This document shows positions 29,861 to 43,236 of a DNA stretch of 64,000 bases, piece after piece. The DNA is from Blepharisma stoltei ATCC 30299 (Eukaryota > Protista > Ciliophora). Numbering within the stretch: the stretch's first letter is position 1; each line of letters opens with the position of its first letter. The notes below the pieces were generated by a model, which was not told the origin of the DNA, searched no databases, and was given only the letters and a program-made list of their open reading frames with translations. The stretch covers positions 310,001 through 374,000 of the forward strand of contig CBFDEM010000035.1 of NCBI GenBank assembly GCA_965603825.1, written 5' to 3'. The position numbers and the translations under genes are program-made.

Positions 29861-30122
29861 TTTTTATAAACCTATTGTTAGACTTATGCATATCTTTAAC
29901 GGAAATTTTGGACCTAAAAATGAAGATATGGAATTAAGAGGGCTGATAGGTTGAATTGTAAAAATATCATGGGTTATTTTTATTCTGAATTGTATCTTTA
30001 GCAAGTATAGTAAAAATCTAACAGTAAAATGATTCACGCATTTCTCTTTCAGTGCAATTACTTTTATTGATTTAGTGTTTAGATTTGCATAGAAAACAGT
30101 CTTATATTAGCTGCAATAAAAT

Positions 30123-32357
30123 ATGTCCTTAAAGCAAGAAAAAAGGCAAGGTCTCTTAATAAAAGAATATAGATTTTTTAAGAAAATCCAAAATCCACGA
30201 AAAATAGATGAATATTTAGTGAAATGCATTTTGAAAGATGTAAGAAATCGGAAAAGCATCGACTTGATCAAAACTTCTTATATAAATAAGCTTGAAATAT
30301 TTGACCTTCAAAATGTCTATCCCTTGTTTAACTATTTTTTAGATCAAAATTCCAAAGAAGACCTCTTACAAGTCATTTTTCTTTCAAGATCCTCCACAGA
30401 AATTGATTTAGCATGCAGTAATGCTGCAACTGTACTTGCAAAAAGTGATTTTTCATTTAATAATATCAATTTAAGCAATGTGCGTATTCCAAAAGCTGAT
30501 TTATCTCAGTGCTTACTTTTAAACGTGAATTTTGAAAACAGTAACTTAAATGAAGTTAAATTTTTGCAATCCCACATTATTAACGTGAATTTTAAAAATT
30601 GTAACCTCAGCAATGCAAAATTTGGATATTTTATGAAAACTAGTTCGCCATCTGCTACAGGGCTTAGCTTCTCTCCTGATGAGAAACAAATTTACTATAA
30701 AAATAATTATAGCTTGATAGAATGGGACTTGAAAACTCAAGAAACAAAATATCAAGCTGACATCAATGATCTTATTTCATCACATATCACTGCGATTTAT
30801 AGCACTAACCTTAAACCATATTTTGTGAAAATTCATGGACAGTATATGGAATTTTGGAACCAGCATGATCAAAACTATTTATTTAAGATAAACACAGCGA
30901 AAATTGTATTTTCGCCAAATTGAAAATATATTGCTGTTCTTGATAGTAAGTCATGGGTTCTAAGCTGAGATATAGATGTAAATAAGCAAACGCTTGGAGG
31001 AACCAAAGGCTTCATTTATAAGGGTTCCCAGCTGATTTTTTCTCCGTGCAGCAAATATTTAGCAATTATCAAAACAAGTGTAATTTATATAATTGAAACT
31101 GGTAATTGAAGCCTTGTTAAATCGATATGGGGAAAATTTTCAGTTAAAAAAGCTTTCGCAATTTCTTATTGTGGAGAATGAATTGCGTATGGTGATACAA
31201 ACTTATTGCAGCTGATAAATTTAACCACATCAGATAAAACAAGAATCTATCTAGCACACAAAAAACTCAGAGGACTATCATTTTCTCCTTGCAACAGATT
31301 TTTAGCTTTCGGATCAAATGACAGTACAGGGTATATCATGGAATTAAAAAGTCAGAAAATTTCTCAGATTTTTACTGGGTTTGAGAATAACGTGACTTCA
31401 GTGTTATTTTCACCATCAAGTAAATATATTTCTTGAAATGATTCTAATTGTAATATCAGAATCTATGAATTTTTCCCTAATATTTTTAAAAACGACTATA
31501 ATCGTCATTATCAAATTCATATAGCCAAAATATCTCCTAAAGGATCCTATCTCTTTACTTCAAGCCCAGACAAATCCATCTTGTGAGACTTAACAACTTT
31601 TGCTCCAAAGCAAATAAAGCAAATATCAGTCAGTGGTTCATATGATGAGTATGTATTTTCTCCGTTTGAAACTTATTTCGCTTTTGGGATTTTTGGTGGT
31701 GTCCATATTTATAATATAAAGCTTGATGTCCTAATTGTGCACAAATCAAAAAACTATGAGTGAAATTACTTTACATTTTCTAAGCATGAGGATAGTTTGA
31801 TTACTTTTGATAGGCGTTTTTACGAATATTATAGCTTTCCTGGTTTTGAAATTTTAAGAAAAATTGATACTCATGAGGTAAACGTAATTTCTCATAATTT
31901 TTCTGACTGTGGGAGGTATCATTTGTGGAGCACAAAATTTAATATTCATATATGGGACTTAGAAAAAGGCCACTTGATTAAAAGAATGGAATCAAAAAAA
32001 TATTGAAATTATAGATTTACTTTTACGCCTCTTTTAAAGCAAGTTGCTTCTTTTGATTCCAAAGAAGAAGTTTTTATTAGGATCTGAAATATAAAAATTG
32101 GAGGAGATACTTCTTTGAAGATTCCAGGAGTAGAAGCACTATGTTGTCGTTTTACTTCTGAAGAAAATTTGATTGTAGGAGGATATAAAAATGGGGTGAT
32201 TAATGTATGGGATATAAAAGCGCAGACTGTAATAGAAAAGATTAGGACTTTATTTTTAAGAGATATTAGTTGAGTTGAAGCTACTAAGTGTCATATTTTG
32301 GTAAAAGAAAAAAAGAATATTCAAATTTATAAATCGAACCAACTGGGCTACAAGTAA
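30123..32357 (+). CDS. Pentapeptide-repeat + WD40-repeat protein (paralog A), 744 aa
   Basis: ACSNAATVLAK..FNNINLSNVRIPKADLS..FENSNLNEVKF..FKNCNLSNAKFG, then FSP../IWD WD40 repeats; one frame with 10 TGA=Trp. Confidence 0.9.
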
Positions 32358-32545: not shown

Positions 32546-32980
32546 AATAATTATTTTCCGAGTAAAATCCTCAAATATTAAATAATTAATCTCAATATCG
32601 CAAAGCAAACTCAGTTGTTTTTACAAATTTTTATATGAATATTGCATCGTCCACAACCATAATTAATCTATTCCAATCTAACTTTTGACTCTTTCTCTTC
32701 CCATGTCTGCTAAGATAGTTGGGGCTGATCTACCGAAATCTAAGTAACTCAAAGAATTATAAGCATTATTTTGTAATGTATTAAAAAGATTTGAAGGAAT
32801 CATTTGGATCTTATCCATATCCTATTCTCAAGCTTCATACCATGCACTGTTTTAACGGCACAATAGCAGTAGTGTATAGACTCAAATTCTTCTAATATGA
32901 TCATAAAGAAATTCTTTGTTTCATTAGAAAAACATTATTTTGTTCAAACATCTTGATATTTCATATTGATTATATTGGTA

Positions 32981-35167
32981 ATGCATAAAAGCAAAAAACT
33001 GAGTTGACAGAGAGTTTGTGATGAATATCTAGCCCAGAAAATTTTGAAGGACATAAGCAATTGGAAAACAATTGACTCTATTAAAACCTCTTATTTAAAT
33101 AAGCTCGAATTACTTGGCCTTCCAAATATTTACACTCTATTCAACAAATTTTTGAATAAAAATCTCAAAGAAGACCTCCTAAACTTAACATTACTTTCAA
33201 GATCCTCAAAAGAAATTGATTTGGCTTGCAGTAATGCGATTACCATTCTAGCTAAAAGCGATTTTTCTTTTAAAAACATAAATTTCAGCAATATTCGCAT
33301 CCCAAAAGCTGACTTATCTCAGTGCTTATTTATAAAAGTAAATTTTGAAGGCAGTGACCTAAAAGAAGTCAAATTTTTGCAATCACATATTATTAATGTG
33401 AATTTTAAAAACTGCGATTTAAGTAACGCAAAATTTGGGCTTGCTATGAAAATTAATTCACAAAAGGGAAAAGGATTAAGCTTTTCTGCTAATGATGACC
33501 ATTTTTACTATAAAACTGACGATATTTTGATGGAAGTAAATTTAAAAAATCAAGAATCTAAAATTAAAGCTGACTTAAGAGAATTTATTTCCTCAAAAAT
33601 TATAAGAATTCATAGTACAAAGTTAAATCCTGTTATATCAATGACTCATGGACAATACATTAAATTTTGGGATGAATATGAAAAAAAGCATTTATTTGAA
33701 ATAAATACCATTAAATTGGAAATTTCGCAAAATTGAAAATTCATAGCAGCACATGATAATAAATCTTTTGTCCGGTGCTGAGATATAGAAAACAGTCATC
33801 AAATTCTTGGTCCTTTTAATAAAATTCCTTATAAATGAGGACAATTGGTTTTTTCTCCATCCAGCAAATATTTCGCAATAAAAAAATCTACCATAATCTA
33901 TATAATTGAAACTGAAAATTGGACTCTTATCAGATCTGTTTGAGGCAAATTCTCTGCTAAAGGTGTAATTGCTATCTCATCTTGTGGAAGAAAAATTGCT
34001 TATAGTGAAAATGCCTTATTATATTTAATAGATGCTGTGTCGTCACACCAAACAAAAATTTTTTCTAGAAATAAAAAAATTCAGGCATTGTCATTTTCTC
34101 CTTGTGGGCAATTTTTAGCATTTGGGTCAAATGAAGGGGCTGGATATATAATGTGCTTAGAAAATCAAAGAATTTTACAAATTTTTACTCATTCAAAGCA
34201 AAAATTAGTATCAGTTCTGTTTTCAACGTCAAGCAAATATATTTCTTGAACCAATTCGCAGGGAGATATCTGAGTGTATGATTTTTTCCCAAAATTTTTA
34301 AAAAATGATAATAAATTGCATTTTCTAGTCTCAAATGTAAAAGTGTCACCAAAAGGAACGTATCTGCTTATTTTCGGTACAAAAAAAGCTATCTTATGAG
34401 ATTTAACAGATTTCAACCCAAAACAAATAGAGCAGCTTGCTTTTAACAGTTTTTATGCTGATTATGCATTTTCTCCGTTCGAAACTTACCTAGCCCGAAG
34501 AATCTACAAAGCTTTTGATATTTACCATTTAAAGAGTGGCATGTGGGTAAAAACAATAATAACTCAAGATTATATATACGATTTCACATTTTCTAATTGT
34601 GAAAGCTATTTTATCTGCTTAAACTGATATACTTATGAATATCACAGGATTCCTTATTTGGATAAAGTTAGAGTAGTTGAAACCAAAATCCAAAGCAGCA
34701 ATCACATTAAATTTACTAGTAAATATGATTTTCGATTTGATCCTCAATGCTTTCTTTACATATGGGACTTAGAAAAAGAGTATTTTATAAAAAAAATTCA
34801 TATAGAGCAGAGACCATATATATATGCAATTGAACCTATTTGCTCGAAATTTGCTTTTCTGGTTTCGGCACAAAGGAAAACATATATTAGAATTTTAAGC
34901 ATAAATACTGAAGAGAGTGTTTATATAGAAAGTCATGAAAACATTGCTTCTTTATGCTTCAGTCCTAACGGGACAGCACTTATATGAGGAAACGATAAAG
35001 GAATTATTAATATATGGGATATTAAAACTCAGACTGTAAAAGAAAAGATCAGATCTTTATTTTTGAAATCTATTGATTCAGTTGAAGCTGTGAATGGACA
35101 TATAATAATTAGAGAAAACGATAATATCGAAATTTTTAAGACAGTCCAATTAGACGAGAGCTTTTAA
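32981..35167 (+). CDS. Pentapeptide-repeat + WD40-repeat protein (paralog B), 728 aa
   Basis: Colinear with paralog A (IKTSY.NKLE, SRSS.EIDLACSNA, RIPKADLSQCL, FLQSHIINVNFKNC); ATG 32981, TAA 35165-35167. Confidence 0.88.
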
Positions 35168-35684
35168 TTTTTATATTACACTAATTGTGGGTTAAAAAAA
35201 ATTAATTATTAAATATTAAAGAATTGTCAAAAAGTAATTACATAGCAAGGCGTCTTTTGAGCGCTAATGATTTATGTAGCATCTTCGTAGAAGCAAACAT
35301 TAGATTCGAAAATAAAAGTAACATAAGAGGAAAGCTAAGATCGTAATAAGCATGCTGGCATTTAAATTTTATATAAAGGTATTAAAAATGCTTTTGATAA
35401 TGAAAACATAAAGGTAGGATAGCTATATAAAAAAATTAAAGTAAAGCCTCTGTTCAAGCACAACTGGGAAAGGACTCTAATATATAGAATACTGAGCACT
35501 GCAATTATTCATAGTTCATGAGCTATATAATGTTATCAAGATGGCTCAGCTGTTGGATTTATATTTCTAGTAATTAACTCCTTTTTTTAGAGTTGAGAAG
35601 AATAAAAAAAAATATCCTGTAATACAAAGAAAAAATAGATTGAAGAATCTTAAAAACAATAAAATATAACGCTTAAATAGGTAT

Positions 35685-37517
35685 CTATAATTCTCTTTGA
35701 TAATAATTATCAAACTTTTCCCATAAATTTGGAGATACAAGGGCCTGAATAGTGATAAGGCCTATTTCTCCATTACAATGATCAAGGGGACATCGCATAG
35801 TTTTTTCCATCATATTTTCCTTAATGCTATTCTCTAAATACTCTCTTAAATCTCTTTCACAAAAATAATGATAACATGTAAGTCCTCTTAATTCACTCGG
35901 AAAAACGCTTCCACATTTTCTGCGTTGTTTGGTATTCTCAGGTGCTGGATTGCTGCGATTATTTGGATGATCGGGCGCGTGCGCTTCTCTATATCTCCGC
36001 TCCTCTTCAATTTTTCGCAATTCTTCAATTCTTCTTAATTCTTCCTGTCTCTGCTCATTTATAGCTATGTTGCGACTTTCTCTCATTTTAAAAAAGAGAA
36101 CAGCCAACGAAAATATTCAAACCATAAAGACTGATAATGCAGAAAGCGTTATAGCAAGTGTTAGTTTCCATTCATTAGAAGAGTCAATAGTATTAGACCC
36201 TGAGCCAGTTGAATTCGTGTTGCCTGTTGTGGAATTGTGAGTACCAGAGCCATTTCCTGATGACCCTGAACCATTTCCTGATGACCCCGAGCCACTACCT
36301 GGGTTTGTGCTATTAGAGCCTGATGTAGAATTTGTTCCAGAGGACCCACTGCCAGAACCATTCGAATTAGTATAATTAGAATAGCTGATTTGAGATGTAT
36401 ACCCAACAGTGGCAAAGCCAATTTTCATGTTTTCCATATCAAAAATTGTATAAAATCTTCGGAGAAAAGAATCACCTAACACTCATGCATATGCAATTGT
36501 TGTATAATCAAATGTTGGGATGCAATAGGAATCACTTTGTATCAAATATCCTGCGGGCTTAATTGTAAATTTTATTCCACTTATTTGAACTATAAAATCA
36601 GGATACTTTCCATTGCAATTGCAATAGAGCTGCCCATCTACGTCATCGCAGTCATACTTGTCATGCAATCGTTTTAAAATACCGTTAATTGCGTCTTTTG
36701 GCCCTAAAATGAAGCTCGTCCCAGAACTAATTGCTGCTTTATATGCATTTGTATAATTAGCTCCATCAAAAGTAGCGCTATCGAAGTCCACTTGCCAAGC
36801 TCCATTGGAGTTTTTTGCTTTTATATATGTAAAAGTGCTTTCTGCTGAATATTTATTTAAATCATGACCACCAATGATAAGCATTGACTGGCCATAATTA
36901 GGCAAGTCAGAAGGATCGTTGAAATCATTGAAGTAAAGTGAAAAAATTATGTGATTAATGTCATGCTGGGCATAAAAAGTATTCAAAATAGAGGGGGTTC
37001 CATCACTAGAAGTGCTAAAACCTAAGCCAAATATACCGTCTGACTTAAGATTGTCCATGTCATGCTCCTTGCTGACTAAAAGTATTCTTTGGGATTTAGC
37101 AGCAATTCCTCCTATTTTGACTGTGTCTTTTCCTGTATATCCTTCTAATTGGCCAACAGAGTCTAGAGTTAAATAGATATTTTCGCTTTGAAAAGTTAAC
37201 GAAAGGCTTGAGTCAAATTTGTTAGACGAAAGCCTGCATGGATAACAGTTTTTCTGATCTATAAAAATCCAAGAGGACCTAAGGGATAGTAGTCCTGAAA
37301 AATATTGTGGAGGAGTTCCAATCTCAATTTTGACGTAATATTGATACTAAATAAAAGGTACGTTTTCATAGTTAGTCACTGTTGACGAAGATGCAAGTCT
37401 TCTGAATGGAGAGGGGTAACTTGTATTGGAAAAGTTTGCTGAAGGTTTAAAATCTAGATGAAGAGGGATGCGAATTAAGGCTTCTGTTAAAGATAGAAGA
37501 ATAAATAAAGAAATCAT
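35685..37517 (-). CDS. Type I membrane protein: signal peptide, pepsin-fold (A1) domain lacking both catalytic Asp, Ser/Gly/Asn stalk, TM helix, coiled coil, RING-like finger; 605 aa
   Basis: Three track ORFs share one frame via TGA, plus a 5' extension across a 15-nt intron. QYYVKIEIGTPPQYF, DGIFGLGF, IFSLYF, LIIGG, WQV, W(TGA)VLGDSFLRRFYTIFD...IGFA; TM LTLAITLSALSVFMVW(TGA)IFSLAVLFF; CYHYFC..Y...RCPLDHC. Confidence 0.88.
37347..37361 (-). other. 15-nt spliceosomal intron
   Basis: Minus-strand GTACCTTTTATTTAG containing an in-frame TAG; removal joins TNYEN|YQYYVKIEIGTPPQ, the canonical pepsin N-terminal motif. Confidence 0.9.
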
Positions 37518-38361
37518 TGTTTATTTATTATAGGATTGCATCATAAATTATTTTCTAAGTAAATTATGAGAAATAGGCTATTTTAGATGCTAATGCCAAT
37601 TGTTTCTATATTTCTTAAAAACATTCAAATCACTTTTGATGAAGGTTTCTTAAGGCAAAACCCAAAATATTACAATTAATAGAATTATGATAATTAAGAC
37701 ATTTAGAAAATCTAATAAAAAGGAATTTAATTATAATTATTTTAATTTACAAAAAAGATATATAAATTACTTATTCTATCCTTATATCTTCATAAGCGCA
37801 TTAACTAAGAAGAAGAGCTCTGCGGTTTTATTATTTGATCTTGAGCAAGCTATTTAAAATAAAAGGAATTTAAAAAAGAAATTTTCGAATTTCTTATCTT
37901 AAATGCAGGTAAAAGTATATTAAAAAGGTTCTGCTTCAGGAAGATAACTCATAGTTATCATTTTATTCATAAAAAGTTTGCTTATAAGAAGCATAGAAAC
38001 CCCAAATGATAACTTTTCTATTTTAAGTAATCCGATCAAATAAATTTTTCATAACTATAATTTTATATATTATCTTTTCAAACAATAATGAAAATAATTT
38101 TAGTGAAGCCTAAAGGCATTCTAATTCTTAAACAGTCCAAAAATTAATCGCTTATTAAGCTAGATGAATTATATATTGTATTTCAAAAAAATCTAAAGCC
38201 TTCAGTTCTCAAAATTGCTTTCAAATTGAATTAGTTTCTCTTGCAAACTAATAGTTAAATATTCCTTTTAGTTAGTTTTTCATAATAAAATTAAGAAGGT
38301 TTAAATCTATGCTTTGCATTAATTTAAAAATACATTTTTATAGAGTTGAATAATAATAATA

Positions 38362-39897: not shown

Positions 39898-40797
39898 TTA
39901 TAAATTGTTAGCTATGCTTCTTTGGAGTTCGGTTATAACCTTTTTATCCAAACTAAATCTATAGTATAAATTGTAATAAAATGTGCCAATTCCAATATAT
40001 ATTTCTCCTTTATTATATAAACAATAAGCTTGATCTGGATTAGGATTGGGAATAAAATTCGCTATTTGCTTTCAAGAATACTCATCTTCACTTTCATATA
40101 TCATCCCTTGGCACTCAACCAGATACAGTCTCTCTCCATTTATCAGGATCTTTCTTTTCCACTCTGCAAAATCATAAGAAATTTTGGAGAAGGAATCAAT
40201 ACTTGTTGAATATTGCCAAATATTTTTATTTTTTCATCCAGAAATCAAAATATTCCTATTAAATAACACACTATTACATGCGCAGTCAGCTTCAGGCATT
40301 GGTGCTAATTTAAATCATCGATTTTGATCTAAATCAAACTTACTGGAGAGATTTAAAAAACTATTTTCATCTTCTCCTCCAAAGCAATAAACATTTTTGT
40401 TAAAATAAATAGCTGATGAGCAGTGGCAGGCCTCTCCAGATGGCAACTTTTGCAATTCATAATTTTCATCAATTATTAAGGTAATTCTAGAGTCATAATA
40501 GCTGCCAAAGCAAAACAACTTGCAGTTTGGAAGCTGGGCTATGCATGTACCCAAATCTAATTCTTTAGTCTCTAATACTTTCAGTTCTTCTCTTTCACAT
40601 TTAGAATCATATATGGACAAATTAGCTCAATTGTTATGGCCTTTCCTAATGAGATAAAGAAAAGTGTCTTTATGGGCAACTTCTTGATAAGATTGATCCG
40701 GCACTGGATTAGAGACCAAGCTTCTATGCAGTAAGGAAGCTTTCTTTGAATTTCACTCTATTTCTGGGTAATTAACTCTACTTAAAAGCACAGACAT
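39898..40797 (-). CDS. Kelch-like protein (possibly 5'-truncated)
   Basis: GTCIAQLPNCKLFCFG, SSAIYFNKNVYCFGG, KFDLDQNRW(TGA)FKLAPMP, NILISG; open from ATG 40797 to TAA 39898; the upstream frame is blocked by stops. Confidence 0.8.
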
Positions 40798-41526
40798 TTG
40801 AGTTGAAATTCTTTAGAATTTAATGATTTATATATAACACTATTGAGGCTTGCATGACTCGTGGAGTATATCCAGACTTACACATTTTAAAGCATTTAGC
40901 TAAAAATTTAGTCTCGAATTTAAAATGTTTATTGAGCAGTTATTGTGATCCTTGCTCATCTTAAGGATATGCTATAAATTCAATCTGAATGTAAATTTCC
41001 ATAATAAGCTTGTGCAATTTATTCGAAGCGCTATTTAGTTTTGATAAAGTTATTTTTTTGAGTTCTTCTGGCGCATATTATTTCGCAAGCTACTCCAGCT
41101 GTTTTCCTCTTAAATTTATTTTCTTGCCCTCCTTCATCTTCTTCTCCAACTCTTTAGACCTTCCAAATTTCTTGCTTTTTTATTTCATTCATCCTTTAAT
41201 TTCTTCTCGTAATGCGTGAGCTCATACAATGATCAGTGTGAGACTTTGCCATTATAAAAATGAATTTTCTGGAGACATGCTATCAACTTCAGATGTGGAG
41301 AATGGGACTTTGGTATGTTGCCTAATGAAACTGTGTGGTCTAAAGTTGAAAAACAGCTTTTAAAAAATCTAAGAACTTGATGCCAGTGCATTAGCCGATC
41401 GAAGCCAAGTGGTGCCCGATAGACTGGTGTGTTTGGGTTAAACGTTTCAAATAGTAGCTTGATTTACTGGCTAATTAATATTAATAAACAAATAAAAAGA
41501 ACTGATAAGGTGTCAAAATTTATAAT

Positions 41527-42565
41527 ATGGGAAATCAACTTAGATTGCTTGATTTTAAACTAAGTTCAACTAAAGAGGCCTTAAATCATGAATTAAAGAG
41601 CAATCTTGCTGGGCCCAATCAAAATTCTAAGAATTGATTATTAAGCTATGAACAGCTTTGAGCCAAGAGATCTGCGCTTTTAAGCAGGCCTAATGATCAT
41701 AATACAGAAGATGATTTTCGAAGAACTTGCTTATCTTACAAAAAAATTCTATTTCAAGTCCACAATTAAAAGAAGCTTATCATGGCTACGTTAATGCTTA
41801 TCATAAAATTTCATCTCTTTACCTTATTAAAAAGGATGTTAAAGGTAGGAAGAATTTGATTATCTATGATACTGAAAATGAAAAAGAGCATATTAAAGTG
41901 TTGGAAACTCTAGAACTATTGGACTGTGGAACGTGCATTACTCAGCTTCCAAACGATGAATTGTTCTGCTATAGTAATTGAGATTCATCTGGGACTACTT
42001 TAATAATAGAAGTGATTATGGAATTCGAAAGCTGCCATCTGGAGCCCTTTGTTCCAAATCATCAGCTATCTATTTCGAAAGAAACATTTATTGCTTTGGA
42101 GGAGAATATGCGTCTGAGGAATTAACTTTGTCTTGGAAATTTGATTTGGATAAAAATCGGTGAATGAAGTTAACTCAAATGCCAAAAGCAGATTATCACT
42201 GCCAAAGCGTTATATTTAACGGCGATATTTTGATTTCTGGGTATGAAATCAGACATCTTTTACGGTATTCAATTGATATTGACTCATTCTCTATAATTCC
42301 TTATCACTTCGAAAAACGTACAAAAAAGATCCTAATAAATGCAGAGAACCTATATGTAATTGAGTGTAAGTACCAGTGATTTATCTATGAAAGCAAAGCA
42401 AAGGATGTGTATGGCCTTTGGGGAGTAGTAGCAAATTGAGTGATAAACATTTGGCCATCTCAGGTGTACTGTACATATAATAAAGGAGCAATCTATATTA
42501 TAACAGACGAGAAGCAAAGATACTGTAAGTTTGATTTACGCAAAATGAAAATTTCCTCATTTTAA
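41527..42565 (+). pseudogene. Kelch-like paralog with two frameshifts
   Basis: Divergently oriented homolog of 39898-40797 (GTCITQLPNDELFC, SSAIYFERNIYCFGG, KFDLDKNRW). Frame changes near 41720 and 42010, and no GT..AG mini-intron explains them. Confidence 0.7.
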
Positions 42566-42646: not shown

Positions 42647-43236
42647 ATGAAACGAAACTTAGCAAACCCTCATCCAGCGCACTCAATTAAATGTCAAAAA
42701 GCTTAATTATTCTCAAAAAACGTTTCCAAAAGATCTACAGTCTTAAAAAGAGATATGGCTGAAGAATTAAAACAAGATTCTAGAAAAATGAATTCACTAT
42801 GTAAGATTCCTGCTTTTCATCTCCCAATCAGCCAATATTATCAAGATAATAGCTGCTACTATCAAAGCAAACTTTTTCATCTTATTGATAAAGATGATTA
42901 TGACTGAACTGACTGGGTTATTTTTGATACTGAAAGCGGAAGAGAGCAATTAAAAGCACCAGATGCTCTGCAATTATTAGACTGAGGTGCATGCATAACC
43001 CAGCTTCCAAATGGCGAATTATTCTGTTTTGGAAGATATATCCTCCATCAGATTTTCTCTTATTATTAACAGGTATTATGAAGCTAGGGTGCTAACATCT
43101 AGAACATCTTGTTGATATTTCTCAGCTATATATTTCAAAGGGCTGTCTATTGTCTTGGAGGATGAAATAACTCTTATGCCTTGTTGCTATCGGATAAATT
43201 TGATTTTATTAGAAATAAATGAGTTAAACTAGTTTA
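42647..43236 (+). pseudogene. Degenerate, 3'-truncated kelch-like paralog
   Basis: DTESGREQLK..LLDW(TGA)GACITQLPNGELFCFG..SAIYFKG..KFDFIRNKW(TGA)VKLV* with stops and frameshifts. Confidence 0.7.

Follow-up and report, generated by a model that had tools for sequence, protein, structure and literature searches.

Membrane ubiquitin ligases that read an ectodomain are known for simple RING fingers, as in the PA-TM-RING proteins (GRAIL/RNF128, RNF13, RNF167 and the plant RMR proteins), which are membrane RING ligases with a luminal binding domain. To our knowledge, no RING-between-RING (RBR) ligase reads a luminal or extracellular signal, and none was found in this analysis either. Pepsin-fold pseudoproteases form a second described group, in which the fold has been reused for binding; examples are the wheat xylanase inhibitor TAXI-I, the ruminant pregnancy-associated glycoproteins and cockroach Bla g 2. 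BACE1 and BACE2 are active membrane pepsins. Here a gene of the ciliate Blepharisma stoltei ATCC 30299 is described that joins parts of these systems. It lies on the minus strand of a 64,000-nucleotide stretch of DNA (C35:310001-374000), which is called the window in the following and to which all positions without a contig or locus name refer. The gene encodes a protein of 605 residues with a signal peptide, a pepsin-fold ectodomain, a stalk, a single transmembrane (TM) helix, a charged helix and a RING1 finger of the RBR type. It belongs, in reduced form, to a receptor-like family that is so far known from this species only and the public proteins of which carry no described function.

Gene structure, transcription and the pepsin-fold ectodomain

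The gene model (Table 1), which consists of two exons separated by a 15-nt intron and contains two TGA codons read as Trp, corresponds letter for letter to the public B. stoltei record P0001 (605 aa, 'unnamed protein product [Blepharisma stoltei]'). This record was used for all analyses of the whole protein and the exon pieces were searched separately; exon 2 and the open reading frames (ORFs) of paralogs were translated with genetic code 4 for local alignments, trees and the ratio of non-synonymous to synonymous substitution rates (dN/dS). No TAA or TAG is present among the 605 codons. Exon 1 is kept in all five paralogs on contig C26 (see below), and the position of the intron is common to them and the window gene. 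Tiny introns, predominantly 15-16 bp long, are typical of B. stoltei (PMC9942806). RNA contigs from four runs of one 2022 study were aligned to 35300-37800. They tile 35773-37506, ending within exon 1 on the upstream side, and both flanks of the aligned region are free of contigs. Exactly 15 nt at 37347 are missing from the contigs of three runs (X2, X3 and X4), which identifies these runs as RNA and demonstrates splicing of the intron as predicted. The finger is covered by a contig spanning 35773-36030. Contigs cannot prove a single continuous transcript molecule; the gene is nevertheless an expressed one-gene fusion in the domain order given above, and the 605-residue model of the initial annotation, with its intron and its recoded TGA codons, agrees with the public record, the continuity of the Pfam match and the spliced RNA.

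TGA is a stop in the standard code. If the second TGA terminated translation, or if two genes had been merged, the true product would consist of the dead pepsin and part of its anchor, without the finger. The contigs of runs X3 and X4, none of which extends below 36247 (35636-36246 is empty), are compatible with such an end. All other evidence makes it highly improbable. UGA encodes Trp in B. stoltei (PMC9942806), and the first TGA lies at the conserved W of the pepsin motif W-[IV]-L-G-D, a column of the family alignment in which Trp is nearly invariant. The Pfam match resumes past this codon, with the last 25 profile positions of Asp matching behind it (1.5e-05). With the second TGA as stop, only 17 residues of the TM helix would remain; the frame beyond this codon is still homologous to the paralogs. 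Two RNA contigs (36011-36158 and 36129-36251) cross the codon, and in two runs contigs continue down to 35773; transcripts that end ahead of the finger, or a TGA used as stop, had been named as observations that would speak against the fusion, and neither was encountered. Two paralogs, P0002 and P0004, furthermore show the same ORF continuity from pepsin domain to finger. Termination or merging of genes was rejected as largely refuted by the RNA contigs, the recoding and the paralog ORFs.

The ectodomain has a full pepsin fold, as had been proposed from the sequence. Pfam Asp (PF00026) matches 36486-37346 with an E-value of 6.9e-40 (137.8 bits against a cut-off of 19.9), and the PDB match to pepsin reached 1.4e-25, with BACE2 also among the PDB matches. 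A model calculated with AlphaFold2 (AF2) from a 108-sequence alignment, omitting the first 26 residues past the signal peptide, obtained a mean predicted local distance difference test score (pLDDT) of 89.9 and a predicted template modelling score (pTM) of 0.88, and comparison of this model with chymosin, pepsin and renin in Foldseek yielded TM-scores of 0.8-0.88. Thus, of the features that define peptidase A1, the fold and the Pfam match are present, while the two catalytic Asp residues and the flap Tyr75 are missing. Alignment with porcine and human pepsin places Ser at both catalytic positions, exactly at the codons where the initial annotation had located the altered motifs (37284-86 for Asp32 and 36726-28 for Asp215). 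Among the 108 sequences of the family alignment, Asp occupies the Asp32 column in 94 and the Asp215 column in 91, and Tyr is found at the Tyr75 column in 97; the window copy has Ser in all three, and Arg replaces the Gly of its first catalytic motif. With Ser at Asp32, at Tyr75 and at Asp215, and with Arg for the first-motif Gly, the domain is enzymatically dead and cannot cut. We know of no A1 peptidase that functions without the two Asp residues. One might consider that an unconventional catalytic centre still makes it an active protease, given the good conservation of the pepsin fold and the high model confidence of the lobes that form the cleft. However, neither Asp is present, nor is the flap Tyr or the Thr-Gly of the first motif, and an Arg stands at the centre, so that activity is hardly credible; with A1 peptidases established to need two Asp, this candidate was rejected.

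Hydropathy analysis revealed two hydrophobic segments only, residues 1-19 (the signal peptide) and 445-474 (the TM segment), as expected from the annotated signal peptide and single membrane helix. The basic stretch K-M-R-E-S-R behind the TM helix follows the positive-inside rule and points to type I topology, with the finger in the cytosol. Composition confirms the stalk in between, which is of a glycosylation type with its eight N-x-S/T sequons, and the duplication of GSGSSGN noticed in it corresponds to a 21-nt tandem repeat; an equivalent stalk is carried by most membrane-anchored paralogs. The single-sequence AF2 model of the whole protein has a pLDDT of 38.7 and is informative only for the TM helix, where pLDDT ranges from 65 to 92, and for the charged helix that follows. 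This segment had been called a charged coiled coil. Its helical nature is supported by the AF2 model and by composition (residues 474-508); it may form a coiled coil, and the ER/K make-up fits a single alpha-helix as well. The charged helix is not conserved in the paralogs.

Table 1. Features of the gene in the window (positions as numbered in the window).
Feature	Position	Strand	Basis or remarks
Whole gene	37517-35685	minus	605-aa protein; exon 1, 15-nt intron, exon 2
Exon 1	37362..37517	(-)	Start codon, signal peptide, short prosegment-like stretch; aa 1-52; translation
Intron, 15 nt, GT..AG	37347..37361	(-)	Spliced out in RNA contigs of runs X2, X3, X4
Exon 2	35685..37346	(-)	Continuous frame with two TGA; TAG stop 35685-35687; P0001 residues 53-605
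Pepsin-fold (peptidase A1) pseudoprotease domain, aa 53-365	36408..37346	(-)	Pfam Asp, PDB pepsin, AF2, Foldseek
Ser73 at catalytic Asp32	37284..37286	(-)	S-L-R for D-T-G; alignment with porcine and human pepsin
Ser115 at flap Tyr75	37158..37160	(-)	Family alignment
Ser259 at catalytic Asp215	36726..36728	(-)	S-S-G for D-T/S-G; pepsin alignment
In-frame TGA, Trp340	36483..36485	(-)	Conserved W of pepsin motif
Ser/Gly/Asn/Thr-rich stalk, aa 366-444	36171..36407	(-)	Composition; 8 N-x-S/T sequons
Tandem repeat, 21 nt x 2.5 copies	36250..36301	(-)	GSGSSGN duplication; Tandem Repeats Finder, 87% matches, score 76
TM helix, aa 445-471, then K-M-R-E-S-R	36090..36170	(-)	Kyte-Doolittle maximum 2.41
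In-frame TGA, Trp462, inside TM helix	36117..36119	(-)	Crossed by RNA contigs
Charged ER/K-type helix, aa 472-508	35979..36089	(-)	10 Glu and 9 Arg in 35 residues; AF2 helix to residue 507
RBR-type RING1 finger and C-terminal helix, aa 527-605	35688..35924	(-)	ARIH1 RING1 match, family profile, alignments

Sister copies and origin of the ligase tail

The B. stoltei genome (41.46 Mb, 64 contigs) was searched for related genes and found to contain at least 70 pepsin-like loci, many of them in tandem arrays. Many of these paralogs are type I membrane proteins with a Ser/Asn-rich stalk, a TM helix and a short tail. Most keep D-T-G, and one or both Asp residues were lost several times independently (C55:50131, C20:310094, C20:305817, C15:114594 and C52:144876). 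Six dead pepsins, the window gene among them, make up one clade (support 100/99); at the Asp32 column all six carry Ser, and at the Asp215 column either Ser or Thr. The other five members form a tandem array on contig C26, to which the window gene is unlinked. The window gene displays the dead motifs of the clade, exon 1 with the intron, the stalk, the TM helix and a RING1 with Asp as sixth ligand (C6). Two of the five array members are frame-shifted at the end of the pepsin domain (L034:1077-2012, at C26:118076, and L033:3150-4097 plus the next frame, at C26:110149-111595) and look like broken copies; one of these is publicly annotated as a 364-aa protein, P0006.

Two members of the array also bear a finger. 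P0004 ('PGA_1', C26:120626-122878, 787 aa) contains dead pepsin, stalk, TM helix and RING1-IBR-RING2 in one continuous ORF. Both Pfam IBR_1 and IBR match above their cut-offs, and the RING2 includes the catalytic motif C-x-H-x2-C and is followed by a Cys/His-rich extension. The ectodomain of P0004 is 57-60% identical to that of the window copy, and both proteins have exon 1, the intron position, Ser at both catalytic positions, stalk, TM helix and the Asp at C6 in common. They differ in that P0004 possesses the IBR, the RING2 and the Cys/His extension, whereas the window copy stops past RING1 and has an Arg at the first ligand position (C1) and an extra ER/K helix. The closest copy is P0002 ('PGA_2', C26:124520-126298), the ectodomain of which is 65% identical. 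P0002 also ends in a RING1-only tail; unlike the window copy, it retains the C-x2-C of zinc site 1, has a 5-residue deletion in the helix behind RING1 and carries an unrelated tail of ~30 residues. The synonymous distance (dS) of the window copy is 0.67 to P0002 and 0.79 to P0004, in a tree that leaves the trio unresolved. As the window copy is thus slightly nearer to P0002, a single loss of IBR and RING2 shared by these two would be the simplest history.

The ligase module of P0004 is 49% and 44% identical, over ~228 residues and with the extension included, to soluble genes on contigs C1 and C3, and 43% identical to P0152, a 928-aa protein from a Logan assembly in which a Peptidase_C65 (otubain) domain is combined with additional zinc fingers and with an RBR. 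The next RBR genes of the genome do not exceed 32% identity. These values point to a soluble otubain/multi-zinc-finger/RBR family of the same genome as the most likely donor of the ligase part. RING1 of the window protein aligns over its full length with this family, including the helix behind the finger (L-x-S-P-x-L-W-x-K), and in this C-terminal helix the window copy is closer to the soluble C1 gene than P0004 is. In contrast to the window protein, members of the donor family are cytosolic, lack signal peptide, pepsin domain and TM helix, and possess a full RBR in which none of the eight ligands of RING1 is missing. The soluble family genes L004 (C1:589989-593183) and L005 (C3:541552-544800) share a conserved Cys/His C-terminal extension. 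In this family an otubain-type deubiquitinase, a string of Cys-rich fingers and a full RBR ligase are found in a single chain.

Kelch-repeat genes of one family occur near the window gene, at 39901-40812 (-), 41703-42562 (+) and 42707-43066 (+), and the same family is found between and after the dead-pepsin genes of C26 (L033:8447-9595 and L035:1-850). One frame of the array, at C26:114174 (code 4), continues from pepsin, stalk and TM helix into a Kelch domain without interruption (Pfam Kelch_6, 9.7e-11), either because this is a second type of tail fusion or because a boundary between genes was missed. Downstream of the window gene and convergent with it lie two adjacent, similar frames, 30120-32354 (+) and 32873-35164 (+), of 745 and 764 codons (tandem paralogs).

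The RING1 finger and its possible role

The finger resembles an RBR RING1, in agreement with the initial annotation. Its best PDB match, when searched alone, is RING1 of ARIH1 (E 0.0012), and a profile built from five tails matched RBR RING1 structures at 8e-12 to 1e-5, led by RNF144A (8e-12) and ARIH1 (6e-11), followed by CUL9 and ARIH2 and including RNF216 and HOIP. Zinc site 2 is intact (C543, H545, C571, C576). In zinc site 1, Arg527 occupies C1 and Asp551 occupies C6, so that six of the eight canonical ligands are left; ligand columns C2, C3, H4, C5, C7 and C8 are present in all aligned tails. An intact second and a degenerate first site, with the sequences RRKC and CERD, had been noted before, and the alignment bears out both substitutions. 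They differ in age. Asp at C6 is found in all three pepsin-linked copies of the finger, including the complete ligase P0004, and Cys in the soluble relatives; Arg at C1 occurs only in the window copy, and its sister copies keep Cys. CERD is therefore an old shared feature and not a private decay, and RRKC a private loss. The protein ends 29 residues past the last RING1 Cys, at the point where relatives begin the linker between RING1 and IBR. Pfam detected no IBR in it, no catalytic Cys of a RING2 is present, and tblastn searches for relics of IBR or RING2 past the stop codons of the window gene and of P0002 (C26:124520) returned chance-level matches only (E >=1). Of the characters of an RBR ligase the window protein thus has the RING1 type, and lacks the full set of eight zinc ligands, the IBR and the RING2 catalytic Cys.

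In RBR ligases, RING1 docks the ubiquitin-conjugating enzyme (E2) of the ubiquitin-charged form, E2~Ub, in an open state, and ubiquitin then passes to the Cys of RING2 (PMC7458406). Having neither IBR nor RING2, the window protein is predicted to be unable to pass ubiquitin by this mechanism. The initial annotation assumed that the dead cleft binds a ligand and couples it to ubiquitin signalling; for the window protein itself the coupling could not be upheld, given the missing IBR and RING2, the lack of relics and the additional loss of a zinc ligand, and the idea fits P0004 much better. It would be rescued if the lone finger activated E2~Ub like a canonical RING, making the tail a working ubiquitin ligase (E3) in which ligand binding in the cleft is coupled to ubiquitination. 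The RING topology with an intact zinc site 2, the apparent constraint on the finger (see below) and the precedent of PA-TM-RING ligases with luminal binding domains would be in favour of this. We nonetheless regard it as quite improbable, because an RBR RING1 holds E2~Ub open and non-reactive for transfer to a RING2 (PMC7458406) that is missing here, and because zinc site 1 is one ligand short with Asp at another. The Pfam RING models also remain below their cut-offs for this tail (zf-C3HC4, 14.5 against 21 bits), the cross-brace being incomplete at site 1. For a complex between the tail (residues 518-605) and a UBE2D-like E2 from the B. stoltei genome (L036:1489-1932), the prediction returned a score of 0.00 with the verdict 'no answer', which by itself is uninformative and no evidence either way.

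Conservation of the finger was examined at two levels. Twelve RING1 columns are invariant in five aligned sequences that include the soluble relatives, and five zinc ligands and the hydrophobic core are among them. Compared with its two sisters, the window copy shows a dN/dS of 0.28-0.32 in the ectodomain and of 0.24-0.46 in RING1, values that are averaged over both lineages since duplication; for the TM helix plus linker, which contains the charged helix, the ratio against P0002 is ~1. The low ratio in RING1 and the invariant columns argue for retention of the finger and against a mere leftover, and it looks constrained.

Taken together, we consider it somewhat more probable than the alternatives combined that the window gene, an expressed, cut-down member of the clade, encodes a non-enzymatic binding protein in which the RING1 remnant has been kept as a docking or regulatory tail. 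Within the clade, a membrane-anchored pepsin paralog was fused to an RBR ligase, most likely from the soluble otubain-RBR family; P0004 has retained the full ligase, whereas the window copy and P0002 have lost IBR and RING2, and the window copy also C1. Either the one-time substrate cleft or a different face of the ectodomain may do the binding, and its site may be the cell surface or endolysosomal or phagosomal membranes. The cytosolic RING1 remnant might hold an E2 or another partner unproductively or modulate the full-length paralog, and would not itself be a ligase.

The main competitor is a decaying duplicate, which is still transcribed and in which the tail is a functionless relic, with any role residing in the ectodomain alone or the whole gene drifting. 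The loss of IBR and RING2 together with that of a further zinc ligand in the window copy only, the broken frames of two of the five C26 copies and the lack of any ortholog seen outside the species would all be expected from decay, as would the variation among RNA contigs. Variant contigs covering 36240-37510 represent a second haplotype of 96-98% identity, with ten changes clustered at 36480-36521. They differ from the window at 24 non-synonymous and 10 synonymous codons, a ratio near neutral, and seven further differences lie outside this count. The RNA-seq series was obtained from mixed strains, ATCC 30299 and HT-IV, of which ATCC 30299 is reported to be virtually homozygous (PMC9942806). 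The variant contigs are therefore probably the HT-IV allele, although an unassembled close paralog could be their source as well; their divergence is several-fold above the reported genome-wide heterozygosity of HT-IV. The near-neutral ratio suggests that ectodomain and stalk evolve rapidly, or under relaxed constraint, within the species. Opposed to decay are the 605 codons free of TAA and TAG, the correct splicing, the 12 invariant columns of RING1, the C-terminal helix nearer to the soluble C1 gene than that of P0004, and a dN/dS in RING1 well separated from that of the adjoining linker. Decay is therefore judged possible but unlikely.

Some of these observations also count against a retained docking tail. 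With dN/dS averaged as stated, present constraint on the window copy is not proven, and the near-neutral haplotype differences would fit nearly unconstrained evolution of the gene or diversifying selection on it. A zinc site with three ligands may fail to hold zinc, and the finger then may not fold. The empty region below 36247 in runs X3 and X4 belongs here too, though a coverage gap is itself no proof. Finally, the proposed binding role draws on analogy with other pepsin-fold pseudoproteases.

A more elaborate version of the retained-tail reading can be imagined, in which the clade forms a receptor-type RBR system. The dead pepsin would capture a peptide or protein, either extracellularly or in a vacuolar lumen, and in the full-length member it would control the cytosolic RBR from across the membrane. 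To the window gene, with its rapid evolution and RING1-only tail, would fall the part of a partner or decoy, tuning the signalling by sequestering E2 or by pairing with the full-length copy. We consider this rather doubtful; if true, such a system could serve the recognition of prey, of self and non-self or of mating signals.

Distribution and comparison with known systems

A HMMER search with P0001 against 1.84 billion representatives yielded 5,674 matches, and among the best 150 only P0004 joins Asp and RBR parts. All seven matches longer than 600 aa that were scanned with Pfam are tandem pepsins, a set separate from the 500-710-aa matches with a C-terminal Asp such as P0084 and P0115. Ten proteins were looked up (eight close matches, the Cymbomonas protein and P0152), and seven of them are B. 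stoltei paralogs. The first named foreign match was a tandem pepsin of a green alga with 29% identity. The ESM Atlas, searched with P0004 in clusters of at least 50 members, returned ordinary pepsin clusters only, with scores <0.8, and not the architecture. Word-based protein searches, which are of low sensitivity (one missed P0001 and P0002), yielded B. stoltei paralogs, a single Logan protein and nothing else, and a literature search for pepsin-RBR fusions or receptor-like RBRs in protists retrieved nothing relevant. The pepsin-TM-RBR-derived architecture was thus not found outside B. stoltei in the sequences covered, consistent with the earlier impression that it does not correspond to a described protein; independent fusions elsewhere or orthologs in unsampled heterotrichs may exist.

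The dead-pepsin clade is a case in which a whole pepsin fold has been stripped of catalysis and wired to an RBR, and it adds to the pseudoproteases reused as binding modules. The window copy represents the next stage, with the catalytic half of the ligase gone and the E2-docking finger kept. Together, the full RBR of P0004, the intact RING1 of P0002 and the RING1 with a damaged zinc site of the window copy offer a natural series for probing a lone RBR RING1. The reach of these conclusions is limited to a family known so far from one species, with two members broken.

Compared with the active membrane pepsins BACE1 and BACE2, the window protein is anchored alike as a type I protein, but BACE is active and carries no ubiquitin-system finger. 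RNF144A and RNF144B resemble it in having an RBR-type RING1 beside a membrane anchor, and RING1 of RNF144A is among the best matches of the tail. In both, however, a complete RBR precedes the TM helix and an ectodomain is lacking (PMC7458406). TAXI-I, the pregnancy-associated glycoproteins and Bla g 2 share with it a pepsin fold in which catalysis was lost; unlike the window protein they are secreted and possess neither a cytosolic module nor a ubiquitin-system finger. The PA-TM-RING ligases agree in overall plan, with a non-catalytic, protease-related outer domain, one TM helix between ectodomain and finger, and, in the cytosol, a zinc finger that belongs to the ubiquitin system. Their outer domain is a PA domain and their RING-H2 a self-sufficient ligase, whereas the window protein has a pepsin fold (Pfam detects Asp and no PA) and an RBR RING1 that lacks its catalytic partner. 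Among known kinds of protein, it relates to the pepsin-fold pseudoproteases and to the receptor-like membrane proteins that act in the ubiquitin system; what sets it apart is the combination of pepsin and RBR parts, which the searches described above did not find outside B. stoltei.

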